A DNA stretch of 64,000 nucleotides from Chlorokybus atmophyticus (GCA_009103225.1 RHPI01002048.1:1203906-1267905), one strand, 5' to 3'; shown: positions 36,946-64,000, counted from the first letter of the stretch. A program made the numbers and translations. The notes: generated by a model not told the origin, from the letters alone.

Positions 36946-38451
36946 TTAGAAGTACACTAACGGGTTGTGATCAGTCACCACTGTGAACTGAACTCCCTCC
37001 AAGTAACATCGCCATGTTTCAAGAGCATGCACTATACCAAGCAATTCCTGCTCAGTGGTAGTGTAGTTCACCTCTGCTGGGATGAATTTCCTACTCTCAT
37101 AAGCACATGGTCGGCCATCCTGTAGCAATACTGCACCACACCCAAGGGTGGAGGCATCGCTAATAACAGTGAAGTGTTTATCCCAATTTAGCAATGCCAA
37201 TACTGGTGCCGAAGTCAAAGCCAGCTTCACTTGTTGCATAGCAGCCTCTTGTGCTGCTGTCCAAGAAAATGGGGCATCCTTTCGCAACAGTTTTATCAAA
37301 GGCACCACAACTGTAGAGTACCCCATCATAAACTTGCGAAAGTAGTTTGCCAACCCCAAGAATGATCGCAACTGATGGAAATCCTTAGGTTGAGGCCAAT
37401 CTTTTACCACTTGCACTTTGCGAGGGTCAGGTTTGACACCCGCACCACTCACAGTATGCCCTAAGAATGGCAACTCTGTTCTGCAAAAGTCACACTTTAA
37501 CAAGTTGGCAAACAAGCGATGTGTACGCAGCAAGGCGAACACCGCTTCCAAGTGCTGCTTATGCTCTTCCTTGGTTTTACTAAAGACAATGATGTCATCC
37601 AAGTAAACCATAACATACTTGCCAAGTATGCCACCAAAAATCTTATTCATTTCCTTTTGAAACACTGCGGGCGCATTAGTCAATCCAAAAGGTAACACTT
37701 TGTACTTATAATGGCCCGAAGGTGTTCGGAATGCTGTCTTATAAACATCAAAAGGATGAATCCGGATTTGATGATACCCACTTGTCAAGTCCATCGTACT
37801 AAAGTACGCATTTCCCGACAGTTTATCAAACACATCATCAATCCGGGGCAACGGGTATCGATTCTTTACCGTGATCTTGTTCAAAGCACGGTAATCCACA
37901 CACATGCGTAGCTTTCCATTCTTTTTCATCACAAACAAGATGGGCGCGCCAAAGGGTGAAGAACTCGGTTCAATCAATCCCTTTTCTAATAACTCTTTGA
38001 TTCGAGTTTCCATTTCCCCCCTCTCTCGGGGGCTCAGCCTATATATAGGCCGAAACGGAGGCTCACTACCAGGAAGTAATGGTATTGTGTGTCCGACACC
38101 TCGATTAGGGGGTAAGCCTGGCAACTCTTTTGTGAATATGTCCTGGTGTTTCTCAATGATGTCTGCAACACCTTCCGTACTGCCTGGCACAAAGTCATCA
38201 GACGATGTTAAGTGCACAAAAAAAGCCGGTGTGTTTTTACGCAACGCACGCTTCACTTGCAGTACAGTGAGAAGCGCGGGGTCAGATTGCTTATGTACCA
38301 AGCTATGGGACCCTCTCACAGACAGCGTCACTCGCCTACAACCCTTGTTAACTGTGCACAATCGTGCACTAGTATCCGATGTCATATTGACACTTTCCTG
38401 CCATTCCTGTCCGAGTACCGCATCAACACCAGTTATGTTGATGGACACCAC
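36946..38451 (-). CDS. pol: Largest intact pol segment of F: protease end, RT, RNase H
   Basis: 501-aa ORF with PFRPIYRLSP, LRMCVDYRALN, YKVLPFGLTNAP, VYLDDII, SDASTLGCGAVL. Confidence 0.92.
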   Translation of the reverse strand: MVSINITGVDAVLGQEWQESVNMTSDTSARLCTVNKGCRRVTLSVRGSHSLVHKQSDPALLTVLQVKRALRKNTPAFFVHLTSSDDFVPGSTEGVADIIEKHQDIFTKELPGLPPNRGVGHTIPLLPGSEPPFRPIYRLSPRERGEMETRIKELLEKGLIEPSSSPFGAPILFVMKKNGKLRMCVDYRALNKITVKNRYPLPRIDDVFDKLSGNAYFSTMDLTSGYHQIRIHPFDVYKTAFRTPSGHYKYKVLPFGLTNAPAVFQKEMNKIFGGILGKYVMVYLDDIIVFSKTKEEHKQHLEAVFALLRTHRLFANLLKCDFCRTELPFLGHTVSGAGVKPDPRKVQVVKDWPQPKDFHQLRSFLGLANYFRKFMMGYSTVVVPLIKLLRKDAPFSWTAAQEAAMQQVKLALTSAPVLALLNWDKHFTVISDASTLGCGAVLLQDGRPCAYESRKFIPAEVNYTTTEQELLGIVHALETWRCYLEGVQFTVVTDHNPLVYF

Positions 38452-40972: not shown

Positions 40973-43902
40973 CAGTCAGACGCCGATATAAGCATCCCTT
41001 ATATTCTGAGCAGTTGTATGCTTCTAAACGTCTTATGCAACTACTGACATAAGCATATTATATGTTACTATCAGGCAAGCGGGACTATTACGAGCATAAT
41101 ATATGCTCTTATCGGCGCAGGCTTTTACAGGCAAAAGCTATGCTTTTCAATGTAAATATGTCATATGCGTGCACACATGAAATAATGCATGAATAAGCAA
41201 GCTATGTGCTACATTACAACAAGCAATGTGCTTATCAATTCTTAAATAGAGGCTGTTTCGATTACACGTCCTCCTCCTCGCTCATAATCGCATTATCATT
41301 AACAACGAAGAAGTTATCTAAAGTAGTTTGCTGTCGTGCGTCGCGTGCGCCAAACACCTGGATATGGATGAGCTTAGAACGCAGTTTACGCAATGCCAAC
41401 TGCTCGATTTCTGTAAAGTTCTCCGCGTGAGAGACGAGATAAGCTTCAAACTTGTTGAGCGCATCCATGCCCTCTTCAAGCGAAACAGGCGGAGGTGGTA
41501 CACTGTCAAAGTCCTCGTCATCTGCTTGCAAACGCAATCAACTTTGCCACAAGCACCAAGCATTACAATGTGCACGCAAGACAGGCCTGTTATTACCTTC
41601 TCCAGCAATCACATTATCATTAGTTTCCTCAGGCTGCAGCTCCACCCCCACACTAGCAAGAACTGCCTCATCAGAGTATTCTGGCTCTGTGGGGAAATGA
41701 GCATCAGCTGCCAAGTACTCCTCAACTGTTGGCAAGTCATCAGCTGGAAGTTCAAGCCTGCTCATCAAGTCCCAAAGGTCGTCAAGGTCCTGCATTTGTC
41801 ACTCCTTTCTGTTAGGTGGGGCATATGCGCGCATGAGCATTGTCATATGCATGCGTGTACCGTTGATGATGCAGCTATTGTTGAAGGCTCGCTATAAGCA
41901 CGCGTCTCAGATGCCCATGCTTGAGGAATGATACGTGTATGGCGCCAGCGATTGCGTATGGTTGAGGGAGTGACTTCGCCCCATGCCTCCTTGCTCCACA
42001 TGATTGCATCACGTGCATTGACCGGCACTTTCCTTAAGTCCATGGTGGGGTCAGCTTCGTGGTGCTGAAGCATGTGTGCTAGTAGCTTGCGCTTGTACCT
42101 AAGATGAGCTTTACACTGTTCAGTGTGAGCGTATGACAGCACCATGCATGTCGTCTTACCTCATCTTGTACGCGGCAATGATGCCGGCATCAAGCGGTTG
42201 CACCTCTGAAGTTGTGTTTGCTGGCAAGAACAAGCAAGTCAGGTGCGACAACTTCAAGGTCTTGAAACCTTTGTTGTTGCCTGTCACGGCGTTCGCGCAC
42301 TGATTTGTTGACGAGTTGTCCAACAGCAACAGCACCTTGCGCTTGGCCTGCTCCATCTCATGGTTGAAGCCAATCAACCAAGTCGTGAACACCTGCAAAC
42401 AGCACAAGCGTGAGTACATAATGCACCACCACCATGGTGATGCACACCTACACTCAACAACTTTCCGCTTGCGCTAGCTGCAAAGCACAAGCGCTTATAA
42501 CACGAGTGCAGCACGCGCGCACGCACGCACACACAACACAAGTGCTGCACACGCACAATACAAGTGCAGCACGCACATGGATGCGCACAATGTAAGTGCA
42601 GCAGCACGTGTGCATGCACACACAATAAGTGTTGCACACACAGCCATGCACATACAATACAAGTCATGTGCAGCTCGCGCACAAGCACAGTTGCTGTGCA
42701 GCATGCATATTACGTTTGCTACACACCTTGTTGTTCATCCACGCGGTCTTGTTGTGCGTGTATAGAACGCCTATCTGGCTGGGACGCCATGCTCCAAAGC
42801 ATTGTGGCTTCTTAGAGTTCCCAATCACAATCATAGGGCGCTTGTCGCTGCCTGAAGCGTTGCAGCACAGCATGATCGTGAAGCGAGTGCGAGCTTTCTT
42901 GTAACCTTTGACCTTGTTGCCTATCTTTGCCAACGTTCTCGATGGGCGCAGCCGAATGTATAGTATTGTCTCATCCATAATATAAACGTCCTCTGAGTCG
43001 AACTCAGCCAGAACTGCCATGAATTTGCTTGGTTACATGATGCATGCATGGCGCATTAGCAAAGGTATGTGTGCACGTGACTGAACTTACCTTAAGGCAG
43101 ATCCGTCAACGCATGCATGACTCCCGCTTGATCGGCATCTCCGCTTTCACCATGAGCGGTAAAGGGTTTGATGCCAAAACGACCCTTCCATCCCCGCAAC
43201 CAACAGCTGGATACTGCAAATGTGTCTGGCAGCTTCATAAGGCTTGCGAAATTGCGCGCCTTCTCCGTCACGAGCAAGTCCGAGATGCATGCGTTGTTGG
43301 CCATTGCACGCTCAAACCACACATTCAAGGCATTGTCAAGCTGTGGATGGTGGCCTAAACGCATGCGTTTGCTGCTAGTTGCCATGGGTCCCGCAGTGTT
43401 GGCACGCTCAATGATTGAATCACCATCCTTTAGCAAGCGAGAAAGCACAGACTGGCATAGCTCAACATTAAGCTCTTTCCTAACCAATGCAAGCTGATCA
43501 GCCTGTTTCTTCACATGTTGATTGTTCCTGCACCATTCTACAATGTGTTTTTTATCTCCCAAACTCAATGCCGTACGTTTAGACGCCATGCCACCTGCTG
43601 TGCATTCTATGATCAGTGCCAGCATGCAAACTTGATGGTACAAACACGTGCACTCCACAACATACACACACAATAGCCTTGGTGTTATTAACGAAAGAGA
43701 CACACATGTATGCACATCAATGCACGCAATTGCAAGCACACATTGCAAGCACACTGACTGTGAGTGCAGCGCAGGCCATTGCGCTCACAGTCAGTTTGTA
43801 CAACATACAACATATACATTGCACATACACACAAATGCACACAGTAAGGTGCAATGTCAGCGTCTTTGTTAGTTACCTTTGCTGCCTATAACGCCTCTCG
43901 TC

Positions 43903-45153: not shown

Positions 45154-46919
45154 CTTCTGCAGTAGGCATTGAATACCTTCCCCTCTTGGTCTTGTTGAGG
45201 GGGAGATAGTCACCGCACACGCCGGTCTGTCCAGTAGCTTGTTGAATTTTTCTTTGGGGGCATAACGATCGCGGCCGCAAAGTCCGATGTGGACTCCTTG
45301 ATCAGGCCTGCATCTGACAGAGCCTTGCACCTTTGCTCCACCGAGTCTTCTTCCAACTTGGAGAGTCTGCACTGTCGTCGGAACACCGGTTCGGTGTCCA
45401 CCAACTCGATGTCCATTTGGTAGACTAAACAGCTACCCAGCTCCTTCACGCTGAAGCTGAGCTGGCTCCTCCACTTATTGAGGAGAGCCTCGAGTTGTTC
45501 TTATGTCTGGCCTGTAGCCAGCGGTCTAATGGCATGGGACCAAGAGGTAGCGTTGGCGACCACTGAAATGTCATCCATAGTGACTACTGCCTACTCCTGA
45601 ATGTGGGCGGTCTCGAGGGCAGTGTGTGCCGCTTTGGTCTCTCGAACGCAATCAGCCNTGCTAAAGACGGTGCAGTATCCTACATCATAAAAGATACCCT
45701 CTGCAGTAGGCATTGGAAACTTGTTTTGTTTAGTCTTGTTGTTGAGGGGGCGATAGTCGCCGCACATGCGCCGGTCTGTCTAATTGCCTGCTGAATCCTT
45801 TTTTAGGGGCATGACGGTCGCAGCCGCAAAGTCCGACGTGGACTCCTCAATCAGGCCTGCATTCAGCAGAGCCTTGCACCTCTGCTCGACCAAGTCTTCT
45901 TCCAACTTAAAGAGTTGGTACTGTCGCCGAGACACCGACTCGGTGTCCACCAACTCGATGGCCATCTGATAAACTGAGCAAACACCCAGTTCCCTTACGC
46001 TAAAACTGAACTGGCTTCTCCACTTGTCGAAGAGAGCCTCCAGTTCTCGCGTCGGGCCTGTAGCCAGTGGTCCAATGGCATGGGATCAAGAGGTAGCGTT
46101 GGCGACCACTGGGATGTCCTCCACAGTGACTGCTGCCTGCTCCTCCATATGGGCAATTTCGAGGGCGGTGTGTGCCGCTTTGGTCTCTTGCACGCGATCG
46201 GCCCACCCCCCTGCCAGGTGTTCAAGCTCTTGGAAGGACACATGGCGGTCTTGGAGAGCAAAGCACATCTCTAACAACCACACCATGCTGTTCTGTTTCA
46301 TGGCGCGCCCATACAACTGACACTACTACTGACTATTGGTCAGCATGAAACTTGTGATACTGCCTGAACAGAAACCCACGACGACGGCATTCGCGCTCAC
46401 GAGCATTGGGTTCCTCCAGCCGGCCTGTGTTGAAATCCAACACCATGTCGTCGTCTTTGTCGGAAAGCGTATGAAGTTGGGTAAGACACAAGAGCTGGGA
46501 GTGCACGGCGCAGTTGACCAGGCTGATTGCAATGGTAGAAGTGCTGGTGATTGTGTCGCATGACCGGTTGTGCTGTGCGCTCAGTGTCCAGGATGGCGTC
46601 GACGGTGAGATGAACGATTGCTATGCAAATGCTCAGCAGCGAAGAGATCCTCCATTGTGGCCAGGTTGGTCCATTTGGCGCGGACACAATGAGCACGGGA
46701 TCCACGACGCGCTGCATTGATTTTAAGAGGATGCCCCAGCAAGGAGCACAGCTGTTGAAAGCTTTTGGCCATGTGATGACGGTTATCGTCCTCGGAGTGC
46801 ACGTTCTCGATGATGTTCCCCATAGGCCTACAAAACTGGTTGATTTGCAGGAGTTTTATGACGCGCATCAGCTCCCAAAATAGTTGCGAGCAAGAATCAA
46901 GAAGTCCTTGGCCTCTGCC
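45154..46919 (-). pseudogene. 5' part of Gypsy G: gag remnant, degenerate zinc knuckle, two tandem diverged copies of the protease-RT linker and RT start
   Basis: FYHCNQPGQLRRA knuckle remnant ~46500; IELVDTE..LEED.VEQRCKAL..AGLI.ESTSDFAAA.VMP.KK present twice (45154-45660 and 45661-46240). Confidence 0.75.
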
Positions 46920-49900
46920 TGTTGAAGGACTAGCATGCACATGCAGCTGAGGCAAGCATGGACACACAGAGACAGAGCTACCGCCACCAGAGCATACACA
47001 AGCCACATCACATTCATCTATTACAAGTTGTCCGCTGGTTCTTATACCAGCCAGTTACATACACGGCTACATTTGCAAGCACTGCGTAAGCTATACTCAG
47101 CCTTTTTACGCGCTCTAAGCTGTGCTGTCTTCCTTACAACTAGAGCTTTGCAACAAGCTTTTACACGCTTAATATGAGTAAGTATACGCGGAGATACGAA
47201 GCAGTTAGTAAGGCTCTAGTCTGGAGTCCGGAGTCTGGTCCGACGGTGCTGTCTTGCTAAGTCCGGACCTAGTGCTCGTCTCTACAAACTTCTACTCCTG
47301 TGTGGAGGGTCGATACTGATCGTATGTAGGAATACTCTCAACACTCCCACGCGAGCAGCTTGACCTCCAATGCTTGCTTTTATTGTTAAACAGATGCCAA
47401 GTCCTGCGCAACAAGTCTTGAACTCGAGCGGTGACAATGGCTTTGTCATGAAGTCCGCCAGCATGTCTTCAGTATTACAGTACTGGAACTCCACTACTCT
47501 CCCGGTCTCGCACAAAGTGATGCATAAAATCAATGTGCTTCGTCCTTGCCGAGGCAATGGAATGCTTTAACAACTTGATGGCTCCTTGGTTGTCACAGTT
47601 GATGACGACGCACGCAATAGGGTGCTCCAGGTCGACCATAAGCTTGCGAAGCCAAAATGCCTTTTTCACATCTGCTGCCATGAACTCAGCCTCTGTTGTA
47701 GATGCTGCAGTAGTGGGTCGTAGCCTGCTGTTCCAGCTCACTTCACTTCCGTCTAACTTGAACAGGTGGCCTATTGTGGACTTCCTGCTGTCGAGGTATT
47801 TAGCAAAATCCGAGTCGCAGTACCCCTCCACCGGAGTGCTCCCGCTCCCAAACTTGATTCCAATTGTTGCGCTTCCGGCAACATAACGTAGTACTCCCTT
47901 TGCAGCTTTTCAGTGCTCGGTGCTTGGTGCAGACATGTAGCGTGCAAGTACTCCCGCAGCATGTGCAACATCGGGACGTGTGCACACTACCAGATAGAGC
48001 ATGCTGCCTACCAGTTCACCATACGGATACAGAGCCCTGTCGCGTACCTCCTGATTCTTTGCCTTAATGAGGGCAATGCCAAGTGCCAGCCGTGTGGTCT
48101 TGGTCTTTGTTTCGGTGAGCCCGAACTTGGTGACGAGTCTTCTCACCATCTGCTCCTGATCAATCTTGATTATGTGTGCCGCTTTGTCGAGCTCAATCAC
48201 TATGTCAAGAAACCACTTGGCCTCTCCAAGATTACAAAATGAGAATGCTTGTTGTGGAGCAAGCTTCGTCTCCTGCGGGTGGTGCACTTGCCTGACGGTG
48301 ATGATAATATCATCAACATGCACGAACAGCCAGACCTTGTTGTTTGCATGGATGAAGAGTTCAGGATTTGCAGAGGATGCAGTGTAGCAGAGTGTCTCTA
48401 GCTCCTGGGTTAGCTTGATGTGCCACGCAGTGCCTGTCGCAGCCCGTATAGTGCCTTCATCAGCTTGCACGCTGTGCCTCTCTCCCTCTTCATACCCAGG
48501 TGGTTGCTCAGTAAAGATCTCCTCCTCTAGTTCTTCGTAGAGAAAGGCAGTCTTCACGTCAAGATGATGCAGCTTTCGGTCCTCAGCAGCAACCATAGCT
48601 AGCAGCGCGCGAAAGGTGGTATGCCTACTTGTAGGTGCAAATGCTTCATTGAAATCCACACCTTCCTGTTGCAAAAAGCCCTTTGCCACCGGTCTTGCCT
48701 TGTAGCGCTTGATGTTGCCCTGACCATCACGCTTCGCTCTGAAGACCCACTTTACTGGAATGGTCTTCACTCCTTGCGGTAACTGCTCCAGTGATCAAGT
48801 GTTGTTGGCATGGAGTGACGCAATCTCCTCGTCCATAGCACGCTGCCATTGCTCCGCATCTGGTGCTAACAATGTCTCCTCATATGTGCTTGGTTCTTCA
48901 CTCTGTATACTGGTGACGTATGCTTTATGATAGATGTCAGGTGCTGATCTCTGCCTCCCAGGGTATCTCCGAGCTGCGTGCTCCTACTGTAGGTGCGACT
49001 GCTTGTCTGCTATAGTAGAGTCCTGCTCACTCTTGTCATCGATGATGGCCTTGCCTGCAGCTCCCCCTGTCGTAGGAAGTTCCTCCGGCTGTGCTTCATC
49101 TGCATCTCGAGGAAAGAAGCTTGCTTCTGGTTGTGATAATCCCTCGTGAAAAACCACCTCTCTGCTCACGATGATCTTTTCAGTGTCCTCCAGCAAGATC
49201 CAGTAAGCCTTGGAACCCGGCTCATAGCCAACGAAGATGCCCTTCTTGCTGATTGGCTCCAACTTGTGCCTCAGCTGTTCAGGCACTAGTGCATATGCTG
49301 TGCATCAAAATACACGCATACCACTCACATCTGGTGTGGCTCCGTAGAAGAGCTCCCATTGCGTCTTCTGCTTCGAGCTCATTGGAGACCTATTGCGGAT
49401 GTAGTTGGCAGTGAGTACTGCCTCTTTCCACAAACTATCTTCAATCCCTGCATCGTTGAGCATGGCTCGAACACGCTCCAGGAGTGTTCTGTTAAAGCGT
49501 TCAGCTGCTCCATTCTGCTGCGGGGTGTAGGGTGCCGTTGTCTCGTGGTGTATGCCCTTGCTGGCGAAAAACTCCTTCAACTCCTTGTTGATATACTCCC
49601 CTCCTCGGTCACTCCTCATTGCCATCATTTTGTTGCCAAACTGCGTCTCCCACAAGGCCACAACTGTGCGCACAACTCCAGCAACTTCTGACTTGAGCGT
49701 CAATGGAAAGATGATGGACAGCTTGCTGTAGTCGTCGAGAAATGTAGCAAAGTACCTGGCCCCTCCCTTTGCCACAATGCGCTTAGGGCAACAGACATCC
49801 ATGTGCACAAGCTCGCATGGATGCTGATTACTAAAAGAGGATAATGGGAATGGCATAGCATGCTGCTCTGCAACCAGGCATGGTTCACAAAGTGCACCTG

Positions 49901-51561
49901 ATGCATGCTTGAGTTTCAGTGTCGAGATGGATGCCGTTAACCATCTTCTCAGTAACAAGGCGAGTAAGGTTGACGTAGCTCAGATGCCCAAACCTCTAGT
50001 GCCACAATGTTGGCGACTCCTTATTCATCACCATGGCTTGAATATCGATGTCTTGAGGCTGCTCCACGTGGTAGAGCCCTCCCGGACCAGTGATTCCAAC
50101 AATGTGCACGACCCCATCTAGAATGACTGAGCAGCCACCGTTTAAAAATAGGATCTCCGCGCCTAAGCGCTCCGCAACCCTTACAGAGAGTAGACTCGCC
50201 TTATATACATGCAAGACGTTGCGTAACACCTCGCTAGTGTGTTACCAACCTTGCACTGGAGTCGTACGTTGCCAACTCCCTCAGCCACCAGTACTTAGCC
50301 ACCGAAGCCCGCAACCTTCACTATAGACGTCAGCTTCTTGTAGCTCTCCGTCTCCTCCTTGTTGGGTGTGTGATGACGATTGCAGCCAGAGTCCACCACA
50401 CCCAAAAAGCTGTATTCTCCCTTGAACCGGATGCGGTGAAGGCGACATGTTTCTGCTCGTGATGATGCCTGTTGTTGCTGCTGCTGGTGCTTGCTCTAGG
50501 TTGCCCCTGTTGTTTCTTCCGACAGTCTCGCTCGATGTGACCCGTCCAACCACACCAATGGCATGTGAGGTCTTTGTAACGAGGGTTGCCCGGCTTGTTG
50601 CCCTTGTACTTCTCTTCATGGTTGCTCTTCTTTGCGTGCTTGCCGGTGTAGAAGGCGACGGCATCCGCTTGCTCGTCCTTCTGCACGACTGTCTCCTCCA
50701 CGGTGAGCAGCTTCAGTAGCACATCGTCTAACGCCAACTCCGATGATGACGTCTCCAACAGGGTTGCGACGACCTCGTACTCTGCTGGTAGCCCTGCAAC
50801 AATGGCCAGCACGACCACCATCTCCCCCATGTTGTGGCCGACGTTGATGAGGTCCGCCCATAGCTCTCTTGCGCGTGCAACATACTTCGTAATGGGTTCT
50901 GCTGCCTCCTTCATGAGTGCGCTGAGCTGCTTGCGTAGATGCAACTTTCCGGCATTATTGTTGGCTCTGAAAATGAGTGATAGCTTTTCCCAAGCTTGCC
51001 TACCATTTTCACATGCAGTGAGCACGGGAAAGTGATGCGGTTTGCAGTTCAACACAAGCAAAGAGTGTGCTTCTACCGAGTGCTCTGACCACACAGTGTT
51101 TGCTCTTGGTGTTGGTGGTGGTGCCTTTGGATTAACATACTTCCACACCTTCTTAAGGATGAGCAAGGCCTTCATCTCCACGCACCATGTGTTGTAGTTG
51201 TCGGTGTCCAGCTTTGCAATCTGCCCCTTGTCGTAGGTCGCATCCATCTCTGTCGTGCCTCCCTTTTCTTTCAGTTGACACCCAAGGCTCTGCTACCAAC
51301 AAGCTACCGTAGTGTAGAACTACTATGCACACAAGCTAGTCTCACACTCCTCAAGCGTAGTGTGGGCCCATAACCTGTTAAAGGAGTAGCATGCACATGT
51401 AGATGAGGCAAGCATGGACACACAAAGACAGAGCTACCGCCACCAGAGCATACACAAGTCACATCACATTCATCTATTACAAGTTGTCCGCTGGTTCTTA
51501 TACTAGCCAGTTACATACACGTCTACATTTGCAAGCACTGCGTAAGCTATACTCAGCCTTT
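46920..51561 (-). mobile_element. Ty1/Copia element H (3' LTR 46920-47343; 5' LTR from 51376, interrupted at 51561)
   Basis: gag MDATYDKG..NYNTW, CHWCGWTGHIERDC; integrase VHMDVC..RSDRGGEY..TAPYTPQQNGAAER; RT HLDVKTAFL..VHVDD; RNase H GYCDSD..NCDNQGAI; PBS GGTTATGGGCCC 51364-51375. Confidence 0.95.
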
Positions 51562-53029
51562 TGTTGAGATTTGGACACTAATGATCATGCATGGAGTTGG
51601 TGCAAGCACAAGCACACACACTCTACCAGAGCATACACACAAGGCTGATCCAAAAAAGGCGTTCCAAGGATTACACCAAAGTCACACCACGGGCTTTTAT
51701 ACCCGCCAGTTCTGCACCTGTCTACTCTAGAAGTCACCACGACTTTAACACTCAACAGATTCCTGCGCTCTAAGTTGCACCACGTAGCTACTCTCAAGAG
51801 CTTTTCAACAAGCTATAACACGCGCCATACAATGATGTAACCACAAAGCTACAACGTTTCTTCTATAGCGCCTGGAAGTCTCCAGTCTCCAGACTCGAAT
51901 CCGCGCCTGGAACGTTCTCGACTGAAGTCCTCGCCTGGACCTTTCTCGACCGGCACCTTTTCGCGCCTGAATCTTCTCGCGGCTATTCTTATCCACAGGG
52001 CAAGCTGACCGGATACAAGAATATCCTCAACACTCCCATGCGGGCAGCTTGGCCTTTAACACCTCTAAATGCCAACTCCTTGCGTACTCATGCGCGACGA
52101 ACTCCCACGCTATCCTTTGCTCTTTCAACCATCTTGAAGACACTTCCCGCACCTCTCATAAGTGCCTCCTTGAAGCTTTTCACTTGCACACCCTTGTTGC
52201 AACTCTCATGGTCGTTTGCATGTGTCCCCACGTGCTCACTCTTGGCAACGTCCTGCACAACACCACCACTATACTGCTCCTTCTTGTCCTTGCTGATGCC
52301 AATGCTTGCTTCAGCTCCCACGGGCACCGGGACTGCATCTTCAGTCTTCTTGACACCTTCAGCAACCTCCACACGTGGAATCACTCCACCACTCGCATGT
52401 GACGCGCTCACCATCACTTGAGCTCCCGCTCCCTTTTCAGTAACAGGCACAATATGCGCCTTCTTCTTCATCTTCTTCACATCTGGTGCTAACTTGGACA
52501 CCTCCACCTTGGTCTTCTTGTGCATCTCCGCACCCTTGACCTCCTCGATGATGTAGAGCCCTCCAACATTGATGCCAACCAATTCTGCGATACCACGCAG
52601 CACTACCCTTCCTATGTCCCCACTAAACACTGTCACAGCACCAACTCTCGCCGCGATGCGCATAGAGAATAGGCTAGCCTCTAGTCCTAGGACATGTAGC
52701 ACCTCTCTCAACAACACTTGCCTCGTCTTTCCTCCAACCTGGGATAGGATCTTCGCTTCTCCTACACTAACTACGAGCACCTCCGTCTTGCCAATCTTCA
52801 CCTTGATTGGCTTCTCTAAGACCTTGTACTTTGCCTTCTCACGATCACTCGTCATATGCCTCGTGCAACTCGAGTCCAGCACCCAACTAGCTGCCTCACC
52901 ATCCGTTGTTGCATGAAAGGCGATAGGCGTCTCTTGAACACGTCCCGTCATGGCATGATGCTTCTCTCCACCACGCTCCTCTTCGTGCTGCTTCCTCATT
53001 GAGCACTGCACCCTGATGTGGCCCTTCTT
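51562..53029 (-). mobile_element. Internally deleted Copia D: 3' LTR 51562-52032 plus gag-end/protease/pre-integrase ORF fused to the pol terminus; truncated by the CACTA terminus
   Basis: WVLDSSCTRHMTSD protease motif and GGLY pre-integrase motif in ORF 52088-53032; no integrase or RT; PPT before the LTR. Confidence 0.8.
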
Positions 53030-53074
53030 CACCGGTCATTTTGAGACCCCCGCATGGAGATTCATGGCAAACGC

Positions 53075-53645
53075 ACTGAATATTCGTATGATTTACCTTT
53101 CAGCTTTTTATCGAGTGAATAATCAAGTGTTTTCGTACATTCTGTGCGAGTGAATCATCAAGACATTTCGTACATTCTGTGGTGCCAAAACGAAATTGCG
53201 ACATTCACATATAAATCGCGTAAATATCTACACAATAAATCAATGCCACCTGTACAAACCCATATACCTTGTATATTCAGTTGAAATCGATTGAATGTTC
53301 AAGGGCATGCAATTGTGAATGGACACAGCATGTGCTCTGCTAAATATTCAGCTATACATTGCCTGAACATTCATGAAGGGGCATAAGCTTGTGGCTATAA
53401 CAGACAGCTTAAACTCACCAAGTCCCAACTGCTCGTGAATAATCAATTGATCAGCTTGTCACACATGTATATTCATAACCTTCATCAGTTTCATGCCACA
53501 GATGTGAGTGAACATTCAACACCAATCTAAAACTACGCAATACGATTCACACTAAGTTCTAGCTTTGAGTGAATTTCCAACACCATTCTAAAACCAAGCA
53601 ATACGATTTGCACTAACTCCTAGCTGTGAGTGAATATTCAACCCC
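53075..53645. repeat. Subterminal repeated motif ~GTGAATWWTCAA, as typical of CACTA ends
   Basis: Copies near 53113, 53147, 53432, 53505, 53568, 53626, plus degenerate ones. Confidence 0.6.
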
Positions 53646-53851
53646 ACACGAATAAACATATACTCTCATTTTGGCTAAGTCCCGAATGTGATTGAAAACC
53701 AAGTAGATTGCACTGCTAATTCTAATATACAGTCCAATATATGTTAAAGCCAGAGTTGCTCAGCAATTCTACACAGCTGGTTTGAGTGGATGGTGGGGGA
53801 CAGCTCTGATATGGACTACAGCATTGCTATGCGACACACCACCTGCTACTA

Positions 53852-54975
53852 CTAGCTCAACTCATGTCTTTGCTGTGCTAACATACTGTCCATGAGTGTT
53901 CGCAATCGTCTTCTCAACCTGTCTGCCACTTGAGGATGAAACCAACTCCTTTGCATCTGCACACAACCACACAGCAATAACATGTGGTTACTAAGCACGT
54001 GTCGGCCTACACGACAGTGCCACTGAAGCACCTTCCACTTGTAAACATTGCAGTGCACATGCATGAACTGTACATGTTGAAATATCCATATGTTTGGGTC
54101 AATTTGACCAGCTTGTACCCCATCTACAAACTTGTCAAGATAAAGCATGACAAACAACCCGCACGCAACTCCATCCTTCTGCTGAGGGACCTGCACAAAC
54201 ATGTGTCAATGCTTGCAAACCAAATGCATGTGCATGCATCCAATCAGTGCTTGTGACAGAATGCATGCAAACTCATCACTAGTGCAATGCAACGTGTGCT
54301 ACCTGTGGTACAAGAAGCTGTACGTTTTCGGGAGAGAAGTGTCGTTGTGAGTCACTTCCATGCTTTCTGCCCCATATGTAGTTAAGGTAAGCGCGCATAG
54401 GTCCATCAACGTTGCGATGCAGGCCAAGGGAGTCGAGATGGACGAGTAAAGGCGGCGTGTCACTTCCAAGTTGGCCTCCAGGATTGCACACAAGCAGCAG
54501 ACTCCAGTGAGTCCTGTGTACACAATCAAATAATTCCAGTTTGCAAATACAGCAGCAATTCAGCAAGATATTCTTGGCGCTTATTCTCACCGCTTGTCTG
54601 GGTGACAATTACTCCCCGCAAGTCTTTGGCAAATGATCACTCTCCCACCTGTCTATCCTATGATTGATCGTGTGCCAGTCATTTTGTCTATGGCAGCGCA
54701 CGATCCTGGTGTAGATATGCGGGTGGAACAGCTTCACCTGAATGCCATCTGCTCTGCCTAAGATTTCCTCTTCCTTGTATCTGCATGTGCATCCCACGTA
54801 CATATGAGATACACTAATAACACAAACGCAACAAATCGTATACCTGCAAAAGAAGTGGAGGATGGTGTCATTGAGCTCTTGTCTGCCATCTAGTAACCTC
54901 CTGTCCGTTTCAAGCACTGGCACCGCATCACGTGCACTTGCACTAGGGTAAATGAACAGTGGTTGCGGTGTTGAC
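53852..54975 (-). pseudogene. Ulp1/C48 SUMO-protease domain (ULP2/SENP6-like), spliced
   Basis: LFIYP..LNDTILHFF; HWSLLLVCNPG (His); LVHLDSL (Asp); VPQQKDGVACGLFV (Gln, Cys); WF.P..RRRLR terminus. Confidence 0.88.
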
Positions 54976-55319
54976 GGCTGCGGGTTGCTGACTGGATCGT
55001 CCAGCACCATGATATCATCATCACTGCCCGAGGTCCACAACTGCCGCAGCCGTCGTGGGTTGCTAATTACAACCCTCTTCGTCTTCATTGTCAACTTCCA
55101 TCTTGACTGCCTCTGCAGCCATAAATGGTTCAATTGGGTAAGAACCACAACACAAATCAACAAGCTCAAGCACACAGCAGCTTACCAGTGTTAGCCTCAT
55201 CCCCACTCTCTTCAACGTGTTGAACCCCACTCTGCACATGTTGTGAAACCCTACCGCAACTGCCCAGTCGAGAACGACGAGCAAGGCTCTCCCTTGGGAG
55301 CTGCGCTGGAGCACCACCT

Positions 55320-55720
55320 TCTTCGTACGCAGCGCATCGCGAGCACGTAACCTCAACCATGCTACCCACAGCGTGCCGTCGACAGAGGCTGTTTGGACAC
55401 GTCGCGCAGACTTGAAAAGCTGCTTCGTTGCAGTTCTTCACATGGCACCTGTGTTTTGGTTCAGTACAAGTGATGATGGTTCTAGGAGTGAAGTTCCTCA
55501 CAACAAGATGCCAAGCATTTGCTGCAATGAAGTCCACTTACTCATGCCTTGGGCACTCCCGATATTCATCCTCCGCAGGTGGCATAGAGACACAGTGCGC
55601 GTGGTAGCTTTTTCAGCAACCTTCCACATCGCAGCCAGATATGGTGCCCCCATCCTTGCAGACAAAGCAGTAGTCTTCATGTTCCCGATGTTCCAACGCA
55701 TCCAGCTCCAGTCTCGGTCT
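55320..55720 (-). pseudogene. NSD-type PHD-C5HCH tandem zinc-finger module (intron 55449-55541)
   Basis: Manual splice: EDYCFVCKDGGTISGCDVEGC*KSYHAHCVSMPPAEDEYRECPRH E|CHVKNCNEAAFQVCATCPNSLCRRH; one TGA at 55613-55615. Confidence 0.8.
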
Positions 55721-55834
55721 CATCCTGTGAACAAAGGTTCAGTGGCCAGGTCTACAGTCTCACAGTAGGGATATGAGGCATCACAATCGCAAACAGTACC
55801 TCTTGTACTTAAAATGCCAGTCGCGGCGTGTGGT

Positions 55835-58800
55835 CTATGACACCTTGCTCGAGGCGCTATTGGTTTCGCTTCGGGCACCCTGCACCAAGTACACAAGATG
55901 GTTGTATGTGATGCTAAAACCCAGGATATATGAGGACATCCAGATTCTAATGGACAACGTTGTCAACTCTCCTCTTACCGAAGTTTCCCGGTGCATGCCT
56001 CGACGCATGAGACTGCGCCTGTCTTTAACAAGCGCTACTACTGTTACTTTGTTGTCATGGGGATCAATTCCCTCAAACCACTGGCCCTTGACCTGCCAGC
56101 AAGAAGGGATATTCATCAGCCATTTTCATACTACTATTTCAATTTACTATCATCACACCAAGCACACGCCAAAACGATTGCAACACAGCCACTTACCAGG
56201 TTGCAATCAAGGTAGGTTTGTTGTGCAAAGCAGGGCTTGTCTTTTCTTAGGATTGCAAATCCTCCACTGTGCTAGACTTGGTTGCTCATGTACCACCTAG
56301 CTCTGAGCAGCTGGTGCTCCCAACCAGCTATCACCACAACATCAAAAGATTGCACCCTGCCATACCAATGGGTCTTCTTGGTTGGGTCATCTGAGTCACG
56401 CCCAACGGTAAACACGCCACAGTCCATGGTGTGGAGTTTCTTCTCCATTTCCTCTACTCTGAACTGACCGATGTCCTTGTAGCGTGCTCTGAAATATCGC
56501 TTGATGTACTTTGGAAAGATTGGACCGCTCAACAGCTCTATCTCGTGCTTTGTAAGCTCCCTAGCAGGTCCACGCCAGTGATGCAGCTTAGTCATATGCT
56601 CCATGTCCTTTGCCACGACATGTCCTTGTTTTGAGCCCTTTCCCTTGCCATCCTGCGTTTGTTCACCTCCCGACTGAACTCTCTGTGTAGCAGCAACCCA
56701 TAAATAAGTCATATTGTGTGCGCGTTGGACATCACGTAAAAAACAGCAACTCCCAAAGCAACTTACTCTTTTAACAGCCTGTATTCATCATCATTTTCAG
56801 CCAACCACCACTCGAGCTCCTGCCTTGTCTTACTATCTTTATCCCCAACCTCAATACGGTGTCTCCGTCCGCAGAGCACATAGTCGTCATCATCTCGTTG
56901 CTTGCCCGATCGCAAACTGATGTCGGAGAAATGTCACTTTAAGGTGTCCATGTAAGTGTTCAGCATGAGCTGGATAGAGTATCTGCAGATGCAACTGGCA
57001 CTTGAACAAGGCAAACAATGTGGAAAGTTTGCACGTAACTCTCAGTGGGCTCACACAAAACTTGCCTTTTGCAGATGCTTGCTTCCACATGCTGCCTTGC
57101 AAATATCATGCGCTTCACCCACTGCATAAAGCGTTCATGTGCCCACTCCCAGTGGTCACGCGTCGGACCAAGCCACATGCACTGCTCTGGTAGATGGCCA
57201 AGGAGGTGCAGCATCATTGTGAGAGAAGTCCGCGAGCCTCATGCACGTGCACCTGCACTAAGTAATAAGCTATGCATGCCATAGGAGCTGGGCATGCAGA
57301 GTAAAGTGTTATTAAAGCCAACCTTCAATTCTTCGAGGTGTGACTGCTTTACTTCCAATGCAGTCAGCCGTTGATAGATGTCGCATAGTTTGAAGATGGT
57401 TCTCTTCTGATCTTCTCCAATGTCGTGTGCAGAGCGCAGCACGTACTGAAAAACGACCGACCATAAGTTGTGCTTGTCGTGCAATTTCATCGAGCCTGCA
57501 TGCTCCATGTAAAAAGTTCCATGCATGGAGAATCATTGCTTTAGCGTAAACACAAAACGTATAACGGCTATCTCACCTAAATGCTTTGTGAAAGACTGCA
57601 GTTTCGAGCCGAAAGTGCTTGAAACCCTCACGCCGGAGAGCAATTGCTCAACCAGTCCTACATCTGTGATTGTCCATGGAGCCTGGGGTTTCACCTTGAC
57701 TGCGATTTCCTTTCCATCCTTCATCTTCATCGCTGTCTGCAGCACATAGGTTCAAGTCCTTAGTTAAATCCAACTATGGCACATGTCAACAAGGCCGACT
57801 ACATACGTACCTCTAGCCAAAGTTTAGGCATGCGGCCTTGCTGCTACAGATCTTCTCGTAACTCGATGCTGTCGCACAAGCCAGCTAGGAGATTTGCAAA
57901 GTTGGTTGCCGGGTTGGCAAAAATGTGCATAGGGCCAACCACATGACCTTTGACAGATTTTTGTAGCGGTAGCCAATATGGAAGGTCGCGATAACAGCTC
58001 AGTCCAAGGATGCCGGAGGACTTTGAAGGATGTTTCTTGGAGTGCAGTGGACGCTTGCTGTTGCGAGATGTCATAGCATACCTGATCACATGGCACCCAT
58101 TGCTGACATACCTATGTTCTGCAACCGAATGCGCAATCAACTGAGATTGCTCACCTGTACACGCTCTCTGCAGTCCGCATGGGTGGTGGAGGTCTGTATT
58201 CTGGTTGCGTCCAACGCTCATCAACTCTGTAAGGATGGTCATCCGGTAGGTACCGGCAGTGGCCTTGATAGATCACCTTTTTGAAAAGTTCCACATGTTC
58301 TCCACTGCACTCGCACTTTGAACAGCCAAAGATGGCTCCATGCGCCATCTGCAAGGCAGCTTTTGATGGAGCTGCGCAACCAACATGATGTAGTTCAGTA
58401 GCCACAACCATGGTTGCAAGGACAGTCTGATATACAGATACAGTCAGACACTGATAACAGTAAGTGCAAGCACTGCTGCTGCTTGCGTATCTGGGTAATC
58501 ATGGATTACAATCTCCAGAATAGATCTGCAACGAAAAACTGCGTCGCGGTGGCTGTCATATATGTCTATACCTACAACAAATGCCAGCAGATTACATGCC
58601 TCAGTCATGCGCATTTATCAAGCATGACTTCAGTTATGGAAGCTGCTTATCCTAGCTGCGTTGAAACCATACCTTCCAAGAGATCTCCCAACTGGTCAAT
58701 CATTGGCTTGAGATAAAGCCTGTAGATTCTCTGGCTGTTTGGGTCCAGGGATTACAGCAGCTAGAAATGTAGTGTCTGTCTTGTGCATCTTGGCAATGGG

Positions 58801-60900
58801 CAGGTTCAACACTGAGATTGTGACAACCCAAAACTCATAGTTCCCTGCAAGTCAACAAACCCTTTGCTGCCATTCGTACAGTTACACTGCAACGAGCATA
58901 CAGGAAAAAAAAAGCTCTTTTATACCTTTGTGCGGATCTTTGAACGGGCTCATCCCGTCGATGAACATCGCTAGGCGCACATTGCGTGGTTCTTTGGCAA
59001 ACCGGCTGTAGCGTTGTTCAGTGTCCTTGAACATTGGCGAATCTGACAGCAGCAAGTACACCAAGGGCTTACGACCAACTGCCCCAGCCCCACAGCACAT
59101 TTAAACATGCATATAATCGCAAGGCTGGATACTGAGGTCTTACAAACCGCCCCAGCACCTCGCCGACACACAAACAAACACAGGCAAGGACACCGAGGTC
59201 TTACATGCCGCCTCAGCGCCACGCCAACACACAAACAAACATAGGCAAGGACACCGAGGTCTTACATGCCGCCTCAGCGCCACGCACACAAAAGCACAAG
59301 GCACGGACACTGAGGGCTTACATTGGACTGCCCCAGCCGCTCACCAACACAATTATGCACACAGTCGTGCCTCATTTACCACTGAACTTGGCAATGTTAC
59401 CGTGTATAGATCGCATAATCCCATCCTGACTTCGATTTGTGTACGCCATCATCTCCGCAGCAACACTAGGTTCTAGGTACAGAGCCCTCAGCGCAGCAGG
59501 CACGTAAAAGTAACGCCCAATCTTCCATGCAACTTGTTTACCTCCTATGTTGCGGTAGCGAGGGGCCTTGCAGACTGCATAAGCAAGTCGTATGCTGATG
59601 GTACATGCTAATTAAATCCCATTGTAGTGAACATTTGCAACAATTGCTCACCTTTGCAAAGTATCCTGTTGGCATGTCGGCCACAATACAATATGTGATC
59701 ACAGCGACAGGCATCGTATGTGTGGAAGCCCATGTTGAGGCCTTCAAGGCATTTCAATAGCTCATGCGTGCTGCCTGGCATCTTATTCACCTTAGGCAAG
59801 AGGATGCCACGCAACAACCGGCACACAGTTCTGAACAGGCTGATGTTTCAGCAGTCAGCAGTATTATTTGCCCACCAACCTGAGCAATTTATTCATGAAA
59901 TTGAAGGGTATTCGATGTAGCTGCGGCAGAACCAATAGCAGCATGGAAATGCCTAGAGGGGTTGTACGAGAGCCGAAAACAACAGGGTTGCTTGCATTAT
60001 CCAGCAACGCAGCATTCACCTTGTCAAGTAGCATGGCATCATCAACGCATTTAGCCTCGTCCGGCTGCGATTCCACATCGGTTTCATAGTCTTGGTCTTC
60101 ACCGGCAACATCACCTTGCTCCGCATCACCTTGCCCCGAATTGACTTGCTCAGCAGTGGAGGTGCAGTGCACTGGTGTCTCAGGCTCTACTTGTCCATCT
60201 GTGGATTTGGTTCTGGCACCTTAATGCTCCTGCAATGTAGCATTCTCAATTCCACAAAATGCTGGGTGAGATTCGCGTTGTTCTCCATAAGCACATTGTC
60301 TTTCATGAGCACACGGATTACAACCTGCCAGCTGCAATGAGTCTAGTGGCACATGAACAATGAGAGGCACATGAACAATGAGAGGCACAGCATCAGCAAT
60401 GTCAACATGCCACGCAAGTCAGGTCGTACCTGCTGGTTGCAAGTTTGCTGCAACATTGAAAGGAGATTCAACACTCGGTTGCGACGGCGTGCCTGTGTCA
60501 ACATGTTCAGTAGCGTCGTTCCCAACTAGCTTGATTGTTCGGTGTCATGGAGAGCTTCACCTGGGGCAGGCCAGATTAATGATCAGACAGCCTGTTGTAT
60601 AGATTCACAGCTGTAGAGAAGTTGCTCTTGTACCTGACGACATGTGTAAGGATGCAGCAGCAACAGCAGCATCAACTTCTTCAAGTTCATGGGGTTGTAG
60701 TCGATCACGGTATTCAGGAGCAACAGCTTCTGGAGTGCCACACCACATGTTTTTGCCAAAGTTTTCATAATATTTAGCCCTTTAATTGTGGTTGTGTGTG
60801 AACACTTTGCTCCCTTTGCAGTCACGGCAAAAACACCTGCGAAAGTAGCTCAGCTGCTACTAACATCAAAAGCAGTCAGCCAACATACTGCAAGCAACTT
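55835..60900 (-). pseudogene. Multi-exon CACTA (Tnp2/En-Spm) transposase: transposase-associated Cys motif, Transposase_21, DUF4218- and DUF4216-like regions
   Basis: CFCRDCK (~60830); HTYDACRCDHILY; IHDSPMFK..FAKEPRNVRLAMFIDGMSPF; VLNLP..IPGPKQP; CSKC..YQGHCRYLPDDHPYR; WEWAHERFMQWVK..VEASI; WYGRVQSF..LLRARWY. Confidence 0.88.
59115..59335. repeat. ~58-bp minisatellite (~4 copies) within transposase intron 59043-59400
   Basis: Repeated cacaaacaaacacaggcaaggacaccgaggtcttacatgccgcctcagcgccacgc. Confidence 0.85.
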
Positions 60901-60997
60901 CCAATCAACTTCCATACAGCCAAAGCAAAGACCTGCAGGCACGCTGCCGCCGCTGACACCGCCGCCGTCGCCGCCGTCGTGACTGCCTACCGTAAAC

Positions 60998-61005
60998 TAG
61001 GGTTT
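60998..61005 (-). promoter_or_regulatory. Telo-box-like motif (AAACCCTA) in the short divergent intergenic region
   Basis: TAGGGTTT on the plus strand between the two divergent genes; an 8-mer can arise by chance. Confidence 0.3.
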
Positions 61006-61144
61006 AGGAGACATCCAATCCCGATTCAAAACAAGCTGGAAAGTCAATCCGGATATGCTCCACAGTTTGCGTACGTGCTCCTTTGCTTCTTCCGTCCAGT
61101 GCATTAGCTTCTAGGGTTGGTGTGCCAGGTAGCGTGGCGCCAGC

Positions 61145-62768
61145 ATGCGCGGCATCAAAGTGTGTAGCTTCTGCAAAGCATACTTGGTTAGGAATGGCAA
61201 CAACAGACGTCTGCAATAGCATGAAGAGAAGTGCAAGCTGTACAGTGAGCAGTATGGCTTCTATGAAGCCTGCTGGCACCACAAGGCAAGGGGGGACAAT
61301 GTGAGGCAATGCAGACTGCTGGCACAATGCATGAGGTCAGATTTCTTTGGGAGGAGTGCACTTGCCAGCAGTGCTCGCTTTCCAAGTTTGAGTGCGACGG
61401 CGAGCCCATGAATCACCTGCCTTGAGCACGGCCTGGAGCGTATCACGATGGGCAGATGTGCAATGTGGTTCGACGTCAGCTCGTGCGCAACGGTCGCGGC
61501 AAGTCCACTGTAATCGAAGACGATGTCAACAATAGGGTGAGTTGAACTGTCCTTGCAAACAGCAAAACAGCGCTTGCATGCATGACCAACTTACTCTTGA
61601 TTGCCAAAGGGGAACGCGGTTGTCAACGATGTCGCGACATTGGCTGCTTGGCGGAAGGAGATTGTTAATGAGGGGCAGTCTTTGGTAGCATGCCGCGGTG
61701 TGGTGTACTGGCCAGGAATGAGCTTATGGTATGCAGGCCACATCATCACTTTTTATGCCAACACAGGTATACTGCAAAGTATTAACATGCGCACGCTCAT
61801 GCAAGCACCGGCTCAGGCAAACATGTGGCTCAGGAAAACATACCATCAAGTACGACGATTTCGTTGAGGACCCATAGCTGCACCACATCTTGATAAAGAA
61901 CTAAAACATGGCAGCTGTGCGCGAGGGTTACGACGTAATGGTACGTGTTGGTGGTCAAAGCTGTCTGAAACTGCAAGACTTGCCTGGTCGAGAGCTCGAT
62001 CGGTGGCCCAAGCCCCCACCCCTTCTGATCACACGCACACCAATAGACTCAAACGGAAGACGTTGCAGGCCGCGCGCACTGGATCTCTTTTGCGGCGCTG
62101 GTGGTGTAGCCATGGGTCTGTACATGGCAGGGTTTGATGTTGAGGGCATCGACAACAAGCCACAACCATCATACCCATTCAAGTTCTGCCAGATGGATGC
62201 AATGGACGCTGACCCGACAGCATACGCTACGATGTGGGCAAGTCCTCCATGTCAAGCTCTAAGTGGGGCCATTCCCACTACACAGCGCTCCGCGTACGGC
62301 AATCGATGGGAGCACGTCAACCTGATTGACCCCATAAGAGCCAAGTTGTAGTTGAGCGGCAAGGCATGGGTGATAGAGAATGTCGCAGGCGCATCAGGAC
62401 ACATGACAACTCACCTGAAGCTGTGTGGCACCATGTTCAAGTTGGATGTGTATCGTCATCGCATCTTTGAGACAAACCCTCCACTGCACTCAGACTTGAA
62501 ATGCAACCACACTGGTTGTGCACTTGGAGAGCTGGCCACCCACCCGGAGCAGCGCCGGCAGTTGCTACCTGGGGAGAGGCAAATTTACCCGGTGTACGGC
62601 CAAGCATCTTGCCGTGGCACCATTGCAGGGTGGCGGTCTGCCATGCAGGTGGAGTGGATGGATGCGGAATCGGAAGTCAAGAATGCCATTCCACCAACTT
62701 ACTCTGATGTAGGCAGGCTGTTGCTGGAAGCAATAGGCTTCACTGTTGATCACCCTCCTTTTTACTGA
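61145..62768 (+). pseudogene. Spliced Zn-finger / Tudor / cytosine-5 DNA methyltransferase gene (introns 61537-61609 and 61767-61833), disrupted
   Basis: CSFC..HEEKC finger; Tudor VVYWPGMSLWYAGHIITFYANTG|KHTIKYDD in frame with the MTase; motifs I DLFCGAGG (62082), IV SPPCQ (62241), VI ENV (62376), VIII YRHRIFE, X NAIPP; stops at 61217, 61423, 61875, 61902, 62349 and a probable frameshift in the G-run ~61290. Confidence 0.85.
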
Positions 62769-63235
62769 AAGGTAGAGGTAGCTCTTGATTGCTGGCCACT
62801 TTGTTAGCCTGAACTTAAACCCAACAACAGAATGAGCGACCCGATAAAGTCAGCAAGAGGTCTTAATCACGAGGATGCCTCTGTTTGCCAGCACGGGAAA
62901 GACTGACCTGCTGGGCAGGGTCTCTTTCAGAGCACCTTCATGCCCAATTGCGCCGTCCGCCCACCCGAGACTAGACCTCCTGCGGGTTCACTGCGAACGC
63001 AGGGTATGGTCCAATTAAAGCTGACTCGCGAATGTCATGAACCAGAGGCTCTGAGCGTGTGCACAAAGTCTACAGTACGTCGCTGACTTGCGCGAGACGG
63101 CTCTGCAGGACCACATCCTGCGTTCGCAGTAAACCCGCACGAGGTTTTGTGTCGGGTGGGTGGGCGGAGAAGGAGAATTTCTAGGTTGCTGTGCGCATGC
63201 GTTTAGTTGCGTGCAATCTTTGGACACATGCCGGT

Positions 63236-63925
63236 TTCAGCGGTTGCCGGGGCCAGTACGAGGGCGGCATGTCAACAGCAGCAAGAGGTGTTCTCTCGGG
63301 TGGGTGGGGGGAGAAGGACTGCCAGCCTGAGTTGCCATATCACAAACAGCAACCCAACCCCAGCGGCAGGTACAACCGCCGTCCATTCAAAAGCCCTGGA
63401 GCAGATCGCGACCAACAAGTTCCCAGCAGAGGCTGGAGGTGGTTGAGAAGGTGAAATGCAATCACAGTTAGTATATGCACAAGAGCGATGCATACCTTTT
63501 GACTTACTGCGGACTTCTGTTACCACCTCCACTCTACAAGTGTTGTCACACTTACCTGTGCGCCGTGACTGCATACAAGCGGTTCAGCGGTTGCCGGGGC
63601 CAGTACGAGGGCGGCATGTCAACAGCAGCAAGAGGTGTTCTCTCGGGTGGGTGGGGGGAGAAGGACTGCCAGCCTGAGTTGCCATATCACAAACAGCAAC
63701 CCAACCCCAGCGGCAGGTACAACCGCCGTCCATTCAAAAGCCCTGGAGCAGATCGCGACCAACAAGTTCCATGCAGAGGCTGGAGGTGGTTGAGAAGGTG
63801 AAATGCAATCACAGTTAGTATATGCACAAGAGCGATGCATACCTTTTGACTTACTGCGGACTTCTGTTACCACCTCCACTCTACAAGTGCTGTCACACTT
63901 ACCTGTGCGCCGTGACTGCATACAA
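63236..63925. repeat. Near-identical 347-bp tandem duplication (2 copies)
   Basis: Units start at 63236 and 63583; only a few substitutions. Confidence 0.95.
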
Positions 63926-64000
63926 ACAGCAGCCAGCAAGGCTCCCAAGGCAGTGCGTTCGCAGTGAACCCGCGTGCAGTCGGGATGATCCTAAGCATAC

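Follow-up and report, generated by a model that had tools for sequence, protein, structure and literature searches.

Here, we describe an 11-kb segment at the end of a 64,000-nt stretch of genomic DNA (the window in the following text), and we proposed that positions 53030-64000 are probably the left-hand part (11 kb) of a CACTA/EnSpm DNA transposon that extends past the window, was inserted in the gag zinc knuckle of a Copia retrotransposon and carries a C5 DNA methyltransferase as cargo. Two divergent genes were observed in this segment: a minus-strand gene for a CACTA-type transposase, followed by a putative PHD/C5HCH reader and an Ulp1-like protease, and a plus-strand gene in which a Tudor-like region precedes the methyltransferase. 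The window copy is dead, as both of its genes are pseudogenes; it is a decayed copy, cut by the window end, that belongs to a multi-copy CACTA family. The features discussed below are the following:

52088-53029, minus strand: Copia retrotransposon fragment, with the end of the gag CCHC knuckle and the Pol beta-barrel domain (Pol_BBD E 3.4e-12)
53027-53029, unstranded: CTT, putative left copy of a 3-bp target-site duplication, a sequence reading of the left flank only
53030-53045, plus strand: left terminus CACCGGTCATTTTGAG, which begins exactly where the Copia frame breaks
53113-53642, plus strand: left subterminal repeats, six GAGTGAATATTCAAC-like copies, including a 35-nt and a 61-nt tandem array
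53846-55181, minus strand: Ulp1-like (Peptidase_C48) region in three predicted exons, terminating in three tandem TAG stops
54996-55022, minus strand: SUMO-interaction-motif-like string DDDIMVLDD, one occurrence, read by translation
55169-55738, minus strand: NSD-type PHD-like finger and C5HCH, from Pfam and PDB matches, with an in-frame TGA
55838-60850, minus strand: multi-exon CACTA/EnSpm transposase gene with a frameshift at 58715; its start is approximate (about 60780-60850)
60851-61326, unstranded: spacer between the divergent genes, with a (GCC)n microsatellite at 60942-60977, read from the sequence
61327-61536, plus strand: Cys/His-rich first exon, by translation, interrupted in frame by TGA 61423-61425 and followed by a GT donor (61537)
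61610-61766, plus strand: Tudor-like exon, first three strands, followed by a 67-nt intron (61767-61833)
61834-62768, plus strand: exon with the Tudor-like end, a linker, and the whole C5 methyltransferase in a continuous frame; true stop TGA at 62766
62953-63925, unstranded: repeat module 3' of the methyltransferase, in which a palindrome (62953-63167; 60-nt arms) precedes two tandem units of 347 bp (63236-63925)

The end at 53030 showed a convincing CACTA/EnSpm left-end anatomy with subterminal repeats. The Copia open reading frame (ORF), which opens with the latter half of a CCHC knuckle (..KKGHIRVQC), is interrupted at 53029/53030, and a CAC-type end (CACCGGTC...) is present at this break. 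The terminus CACCGGTCATTTTGAG was single in the window when up to three mismatches were allowed on both strands. A 15-nt subterminal motif was found six times, always on the plus strand and always within 53113-53642, and this count was reached in none of 100 shuffles; a subterminal array of short repeats, as in CACTA/EnSpm elements, is thus present. No inverted terminus, plus-strand ACCGGTG, or inverted subterminal motif was detected in 53030-64000, and no right end was found either between the two genes or up to 64000. Since the inverted partner of the terminus is absent from the window, the right end should lie outside it, beyond 64000. When 53030-64000 was compared with the rest of the window by blastn and tblastx, neither Copia nor other window repeats were found within it, and no other copy of the element was found in the window; with 11 kb showing no match to the remaining window, Copia has not resumed by 64000.

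The minus-strand gene encodes a transposase of the Transposase_21 (tnp2) type. Within 59100-58151 of the minus strand, four collinear Transposase_21 pieces (E 6e-7 to 0.013), with short introns between them, covered profile positions 8-44, 47-86, 103-136, and 144-207 in order; the best piece (E 6e-7) scored 29.3 bits, with a cut-off of 28.6. DUF4218 was matched on the same strand at 57214-56960 (E 4.8e-6), and a DUF4216-like tail was read, by eye only, at 56784-55838. A preliminary description of this DNA had proposed a CACTA transposon with a transposase at 53030-64000; the transposase is borne out by the collinear Transposase_21 pieces and DUF4218, and these matches, together with the subterminal repeats and the 53030 end that cuts the Copia knuckle, also uphold the identity of the element and its left terminus. 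A homology search of protein collections with one transposase exon returned no candidates. A 61-nt tandem repeat of 3.3 copies was observed at 59127-59323 in an apparent intron of the transposase, and contigs from other copies break or differ there.

The last conserved transposase exon ends approximately 100 nt upstream of the PHD/C5HCH region, and this short gap argues for one transcription unit. The PHD-like finger (CFVCKDGG...C.KSYHAHC...CPRH) was read at 55738-55540, where zf-HC5HC2H matched at E 0.0074, and it is followed by a C5HCH at 55537-55169 (Pfam E 1.6e-5; 25.4 bits, with a cut-off of 26.3); the PHD half is readable and is interrupted by a TGA. The PHD5-C5HCH structures of NSD3, NSD1, and NSD2 were also matched, with E values from 7.8e-4 (NSD3, 4gnd) to 0.011. 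The Pfam C5HCH and 4gnd matches thus support the PHD-C5HCH reader that had been suggested previously. Of the SIM-like motifs mentioned in the same description, a single acidic string (DDDIMVLDD, 55022-54996) was seen, and these motifs were not confirmed. In the Ulp1-like region, two sub-cut-off Peptidase_C48 matches were collinear, one for profile positions 95-138 at 54605-54279 (E 0.025) and the other for positions 161-190 at 54199-53852 (E 0.0037), and the sequence contexts of the catalytic His/Asp and Gln/Cys were readable (..LNDTILHFF.., ..THWSLLLV..LDSLG.., and ..QQKDGVACGLFV..). On these two pieces and these contexts, the Ulp1 protease of the preliminary description was retained as Ulp1-like. 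A PDB sequence search with this region gave no match. The three TAG codons that terminate it, at 53854-53846, lie approximately 820 bp from the left terminus. Taken together, the transposase, the PHD/C5HCH, and the Ulp1-like domain probably come from one gene of approximately 7 kb, either as a fusion or by alternative splicing.

The plus-strand gene begins approximately 300-500 bp from the transposase gene, in agreement with the close head-to-head arrangement noted at the outset. In its last exon, the methyltransferase motifs LDLFCGAGG, SPPCQ, IENV, RHRIFE, and AIPP aligned with those of 12 relatives (motifs I, IV, VI, and VIII and the C-terminal motif), and the motif set of a C5 methyltransferase is therefore present. 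PF00145 matched the N-terminal piece at E 3e-4 (20.7 bits, with a cut-off of 22), PHROG 363 scored the enzyme at 4.9e-18, and the relatives were 37-53% identical to it, with tblastn E values down to 1e-49. The motifs within one exon, the identity to these relatives, and PHROG 363 together confirmed that the enzyme was correctly named a C5 methyltransferase. The upstream exons were more difficult to assign. A modelled GT-AG intron (61537-61609) joins the Cys/His-rich exon to the exon 61610-61766; a Pfam search of the Cys/His-rich exon matched no family, and the zinc finger of the preliminary description was thus not confirmed. The single Tudor-like exon alone had no Pfam or PDB match. When the peptide was spliced across 61767-61833, LBR_tudor was matched at E 0.002 (18.3 bits, with a cut-off of 22) by an alignment that crosses the junction, and the 53BP1 Tudor was matched at E 0.064, with the aromatic positions assigned by eye only. 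Thus, the Tudor reader of the preliminary description is weak: the spliced peptide scores as such a domain, and it does so below the Pfam cut-off. Downstream of the methyltransferase, the two 347-bp units of the repeat module are 99% identical, and the palindrome and the tandem unit both contain a GGGTGGGTGGG-rich motif; this module may have arisen by insertion of a small element, or it may belong to the structure of the transposon itself.

The decay of the window copy, which the preliminary description had not noted, was evident in both genes. At 58715, one surplus base causes a frameshift within Transposase_21, and this base is absent from the dominant contigs of two public runs (X1 and X2), which we compared as contigs; since its removal restores the conserved ..IPGPKQPENLQAYLKPMIDQL.. 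stretch, the window transposase is frameshifted. On the same strand, the in-frame TGA at 55615-55613 lies within the PHD finger (..CDVEGC*KSYHAHC.., with the stop as an asterisk). Four in-frame stops were found in the methyltransferase gene (TGA 61423, TAG 61875, TAA 61902, and TAG 62349), which thus has no intact frame; TAG 62349 lies between motifs IV and VI, and the tblastn alignments of relatives continue straight across it. In addition, a codon is missing after 62706 in the window, and the dominant contigs keep this codon, with which the YSE motif regains its conserved Glu. Both contig differences (58715 and 62706) are nearer to the conserved family motifs, and these results indicated that better copies exist. 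A genetic code with TAA and TAG read as Gln was considered as the cause of the stops and was rejected, as ORFs ended by TGA only were not unusually long and TGA also interrupts conserved domains.

We addressed the origin of the methyltransferase by comparison with its relatives and proposed horizontal transfer from a giant virus or a phage-like source as its probable origin. Among 1.84 billion representatives, the best matches were 42-48% identical, and actinophage methyltransferases were approximately 40% identical. The nearest relatives, P0001 and P0004, are encoded on contigs packed with giant-virus-type genes: one of these contigs carries topoisomerase II, ribonucleotide reductase, and a U-box gene, and the other, of 245 kb, carries an RNA polymerase Rpb1 with an intein and PolB. 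In a quick tree, the window enzyme was placed in a 14-member group with P0001 and P0004, with moderate support (84 in the Shimodaira-Hasegawa-like approximate likelihood ratio test, SH-aLRT). Moreover, introns are present in the reader part of the gene and absent from the enzyme part, in line with a core that was gained by horizontal transfer and joined to host-type exons. In the group of the window enzyme, an MBD is inserted between the catalytic halves in P0002, P0006, and P0028, and an N-terminal zf-CW is present in P0126; judging from these architectures, chromatin modules have been gained more than once in this group. Pfam Tudor was found in none of the 20 relatives scanned, which included nearly all of those longer than 350 residues among the top 150, and an exact-protein look-up of the methyltransferase ORF returned no record. 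Among the relatives, P0003 and P0014 each contain two methyltransferase cores in tandem, whereas P0010 appears to be circularly permuted.

The relationship between the methyltransferase gene and the transposon was analyzed with the contigs of X1 and X2. Contigs approximately 97% identical to the window cross the inter-gene spacer in both runs (X2 record 11, 59256-61240; X1 record 5, 59871-61105), and, with an identity of only approximately 97%, they derive from other copies or strains. The depth of the main contigs was nearly equal over the transposase, the spacer, the methyltransferase, and the downstream region (26-34 in X1 and 18-25 in X2), which supports the linkage of the two genes that had been claimed; minor variant contigs indicate several copies, and an X2 contig is collinear from 62707 to beyond 63200. 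A right terminus at 60900-61145 had been named in the preliminary description as the finding that would contradict it; this terminus was looked for and none was found, and the other-copy contigs span 59256-61240. With no right end up to 64000, and with contigs that cross the spacer at equal depth, the methyltransferase is likely to be internal cargo of the CACTA unit.

Several observations weigh against this interpretation. The right terminus and the second copy of the target-site duplication would lie beyond the window, and we thus infer the internal position of the methyltransferase indirectly. The Tudor, Ulp1, and PHD matches are all under the Pfam cut-offs, and both the splicing and the fusion of transposase and Ulp1 are models; the placement of the enzyme with giant viruses is moderately supported, with the actinophage enzymes almost as similar. 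In addition, two X1 contigs diverge from the window, one exactly at the methyltransferase stop (62768) and the other at 62883, and a divergence just after this stop suggests that the cassette may move or be captured independently. Finally, the summed depth over 61200-61800, the Tudor region, was approximately 1.5 times that over 60000-61000, the 5' part of the transposase. The diverging contigs and the greater summed depth are what would be expected of a composite locus, in which the Tudor-methyltransferase cassette is a second mobile unit, or a module that lands beside or inside various transposons, and the surroundings, a nest of Copia, Gypsy, and pogo-like fragments, would suit such a history. 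However, no inverted repeats flanking the cassette were found, the main contigs of the two runs are equally deep over both genes, no CACTA right end separates these genes, and, among the contigs listed, none stops on the transposase side, with 59256-61240 being crossed; we therefore regarded a composite locus as unlikely. It is far less probable still that the methyltransferase is an endogenised giant-virus remnant, or a host gene, adjoining a truncated CACTA fragment. Its nearest relatives do reside on giant-virus-like contigs, and orphan viral DNA methyltransferases (DNMTs) have been documented in eukaryotic genomes (PMC12344493), but the gene has eukaryotic introns and a reader domain in the enzyme's own exon, is multi-copy at the depth of the transposase, and lies within DNA inserted into Copia, and no further viral gene was found in the window.

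For an intact copy of the CACTA unit with its methyltransferase cargo, we proposed the following mechanism. Excision and reinsertion of the unit would depend on the transposase. The methyltransferase would be held at methylated histone tails by its Tudor-like module and would write 5-methylcytosine (5mC) there; most likely, this 5mC would dampen the copies of the element itself or mark them. The PHD/C5HCH-Ulp1 tail, in turn, would read H3 tails and strip SUMO from silencing factors at the element. The window copy itself is incapable of these activities, given the frameshift, the PHD stop, and the four stops and codon deletion of the methyltransferase gene. The same anatomy could also be explained by a neutral passenger, a Pack-type-like captured fragment that has no role and is decaying in all copies. 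The window copy, in which 1.4 kb contain four stops and lack one codon, would be in line with this explanation, and no RNA run was found to contain the stretch; yet the catalytic motifs are fully conserved with respect to relatives at 40-50% identity, the dominant contigs restore the conserved Glu of YSE, and the transposase of the window copy is equally decayed, which indicates that decay tracks the age of the copy and not the cargo. A neutral passenger thus appeared doubtful to us, and we favoured over it that 5mC serves to mark or limit the element itself, together with local anti-silencing. A more extensive proposal would be that intact members form an active CACTA family with a Tudor-guided C5 writer of giant-virus origin and a reader-coupled SUMO protease, that the cassette has spread over several transposon superfamilies of this genome, and that mobile elements, rather than host DNMTs, shape part of the methylome; we put this forward as a tentative suggestion, well short of an even chance.

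Cytosine methylation is a classic host weapon against transposons, and plant CACTA/EnSpm and Mutator elements carry Ulp1-like (Peptidase_C48) domains. The window element is similar to the plant CACTA/EnSpm elements in its Transposase_21/DUF4218, its CAC... left terminus, its subterminal repeats, and its putative element-encoded Ulp1-like protease; in contrast to plant CACTA and Mutator elements, it has an NSD-type PHD/C5HCH before the protease and a methyltransferase gene, and its terminus is CACCGG rather than CACTA. The finger resembles the PHD5-C5HCH reader of H3 tails in NSD1-3 (4gnd, 2naa, and 9gbf), as both the Cys/His spacing of its C5HCH and the PHD half in front of it can be aligned; in contrast, a SET domain is absent here, and the finger is linked to a transposase and a protease and, in the window copy, interrupted by a stop. 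The methyltransferase shares a core of approximately 220 residues, the motif set, and 37-53% identity with the C5 enzymes of giant viruses and actinophages (PHROG 363, P0001, and P0004); around the two examined genes, P0001 and P0004, the gene set is densely virus-like, whereas the window gene is probably in a transposon.

Retrotransposons with a DNMT (LINE, DIRS, and Copia) have been described in Symbiodinium and Klebsormidium (PMC5890265, de Mendoza et al. 2018). As in the window element, a mobile element there has a C5 methyltransferase with its catalytic motifs kept, and self-methylation or interference with the host epigenome was proposed. The enzyme of the DIRS and Copia elements is a host-type Dnmt3, located within the Pol polyprotein in DIRS (PMC5890265), whereas the window has a compact enzyme of virus or phage type; in addition, the window carrier is a cut-and-paste CACTA, and its enzyme is encoded by its own divergent gene with a putative Tudor-like reader fused. 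Genes for TET/JBP dioxygenases are carried by DNA transposons of fungi, among them EnSpm-related lineages (PMC12730594), and these are comparable with the window element in that a separate gene beside the transposase encodes an enzyme acting on cytosine methylation. The TET/JBP cargo is thought to remove 5mC and is found in fungal hosts (PMC12730594), whereas the window cargo is, by its sequence, a writer of 5mC in an alga-like genome. The capture of PHD and Chromo readers is a general phenomenon among transposons (bioRxiv 10.1101/2021.11.30.470311), and orphan viral DNMTs in eukaryotes have been reported to be generally without companion domains (PMC12344493). Thus, the term candidate new system, used in the preliminary description, was overstated, since both DNMT capture by retrotransposons (PMC5890265) and PHD capture by DNA transposons (bioRxiv 10.1101/2021.11.30.470311) had already been documented. 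As far as we found, elements with their own C5 methyltransferase have so far been described for retrotransposons only (PMC5890265, PMC12344493), and the literature searched contained no description of a DNA transposon with a C5 DNMT, of a Tudor-DNMT fusion, or of a viral-type DNMT fused to Tudor in a CACTA element. If our interpretation is correct, a cut-and-paste family that carries a methyltransferase of viral descent and a SUMO protease, each fused to a reader, would extend the arms-race theme to DNA transposons, and it would provide a natural chimaera of a histone reader and a compact DNMT, the targeting logic of which would be directly testable. The window copy, dead and ending at the window edge, contributes the anatomy only.

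The window as a whole is transposon-rich eukaryotic DNA of approximately 50% G+C with moderate CpG depletion. The observed/expected ratio of CpG was 0.74 window-wide, with a TpG/CpA excess of 1.35, and the minimum (0.58) was observed in the transposase gene; this pattern is compatible with CpG methylation and deamination in the genome. The window is a nest of transposons with Copia, Gypsy, and pogo-like fragments. A second, fuller Copia was found on the minus strand at 46870-51560, with gag at 51292-50333 and RVT_2 at 48794-47913; its long-terminal-repeat-like ends (51374-51562 and 46918-47106) are 95.8% identical, and its ORF is split over several frames. A 473-bp repeat was present at 51560-52032 and at 23990-24461 with 92% identity, and one of these copies lies between the two Copia pieces. 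Further fragments included a Gypsy-type reverse transcriptase/RNase H ORF of 501 aa at 36949-38451, a pogo/Tc5-type helix-turn-helix at 43095-43754, and an integrase core at 15361-16218.

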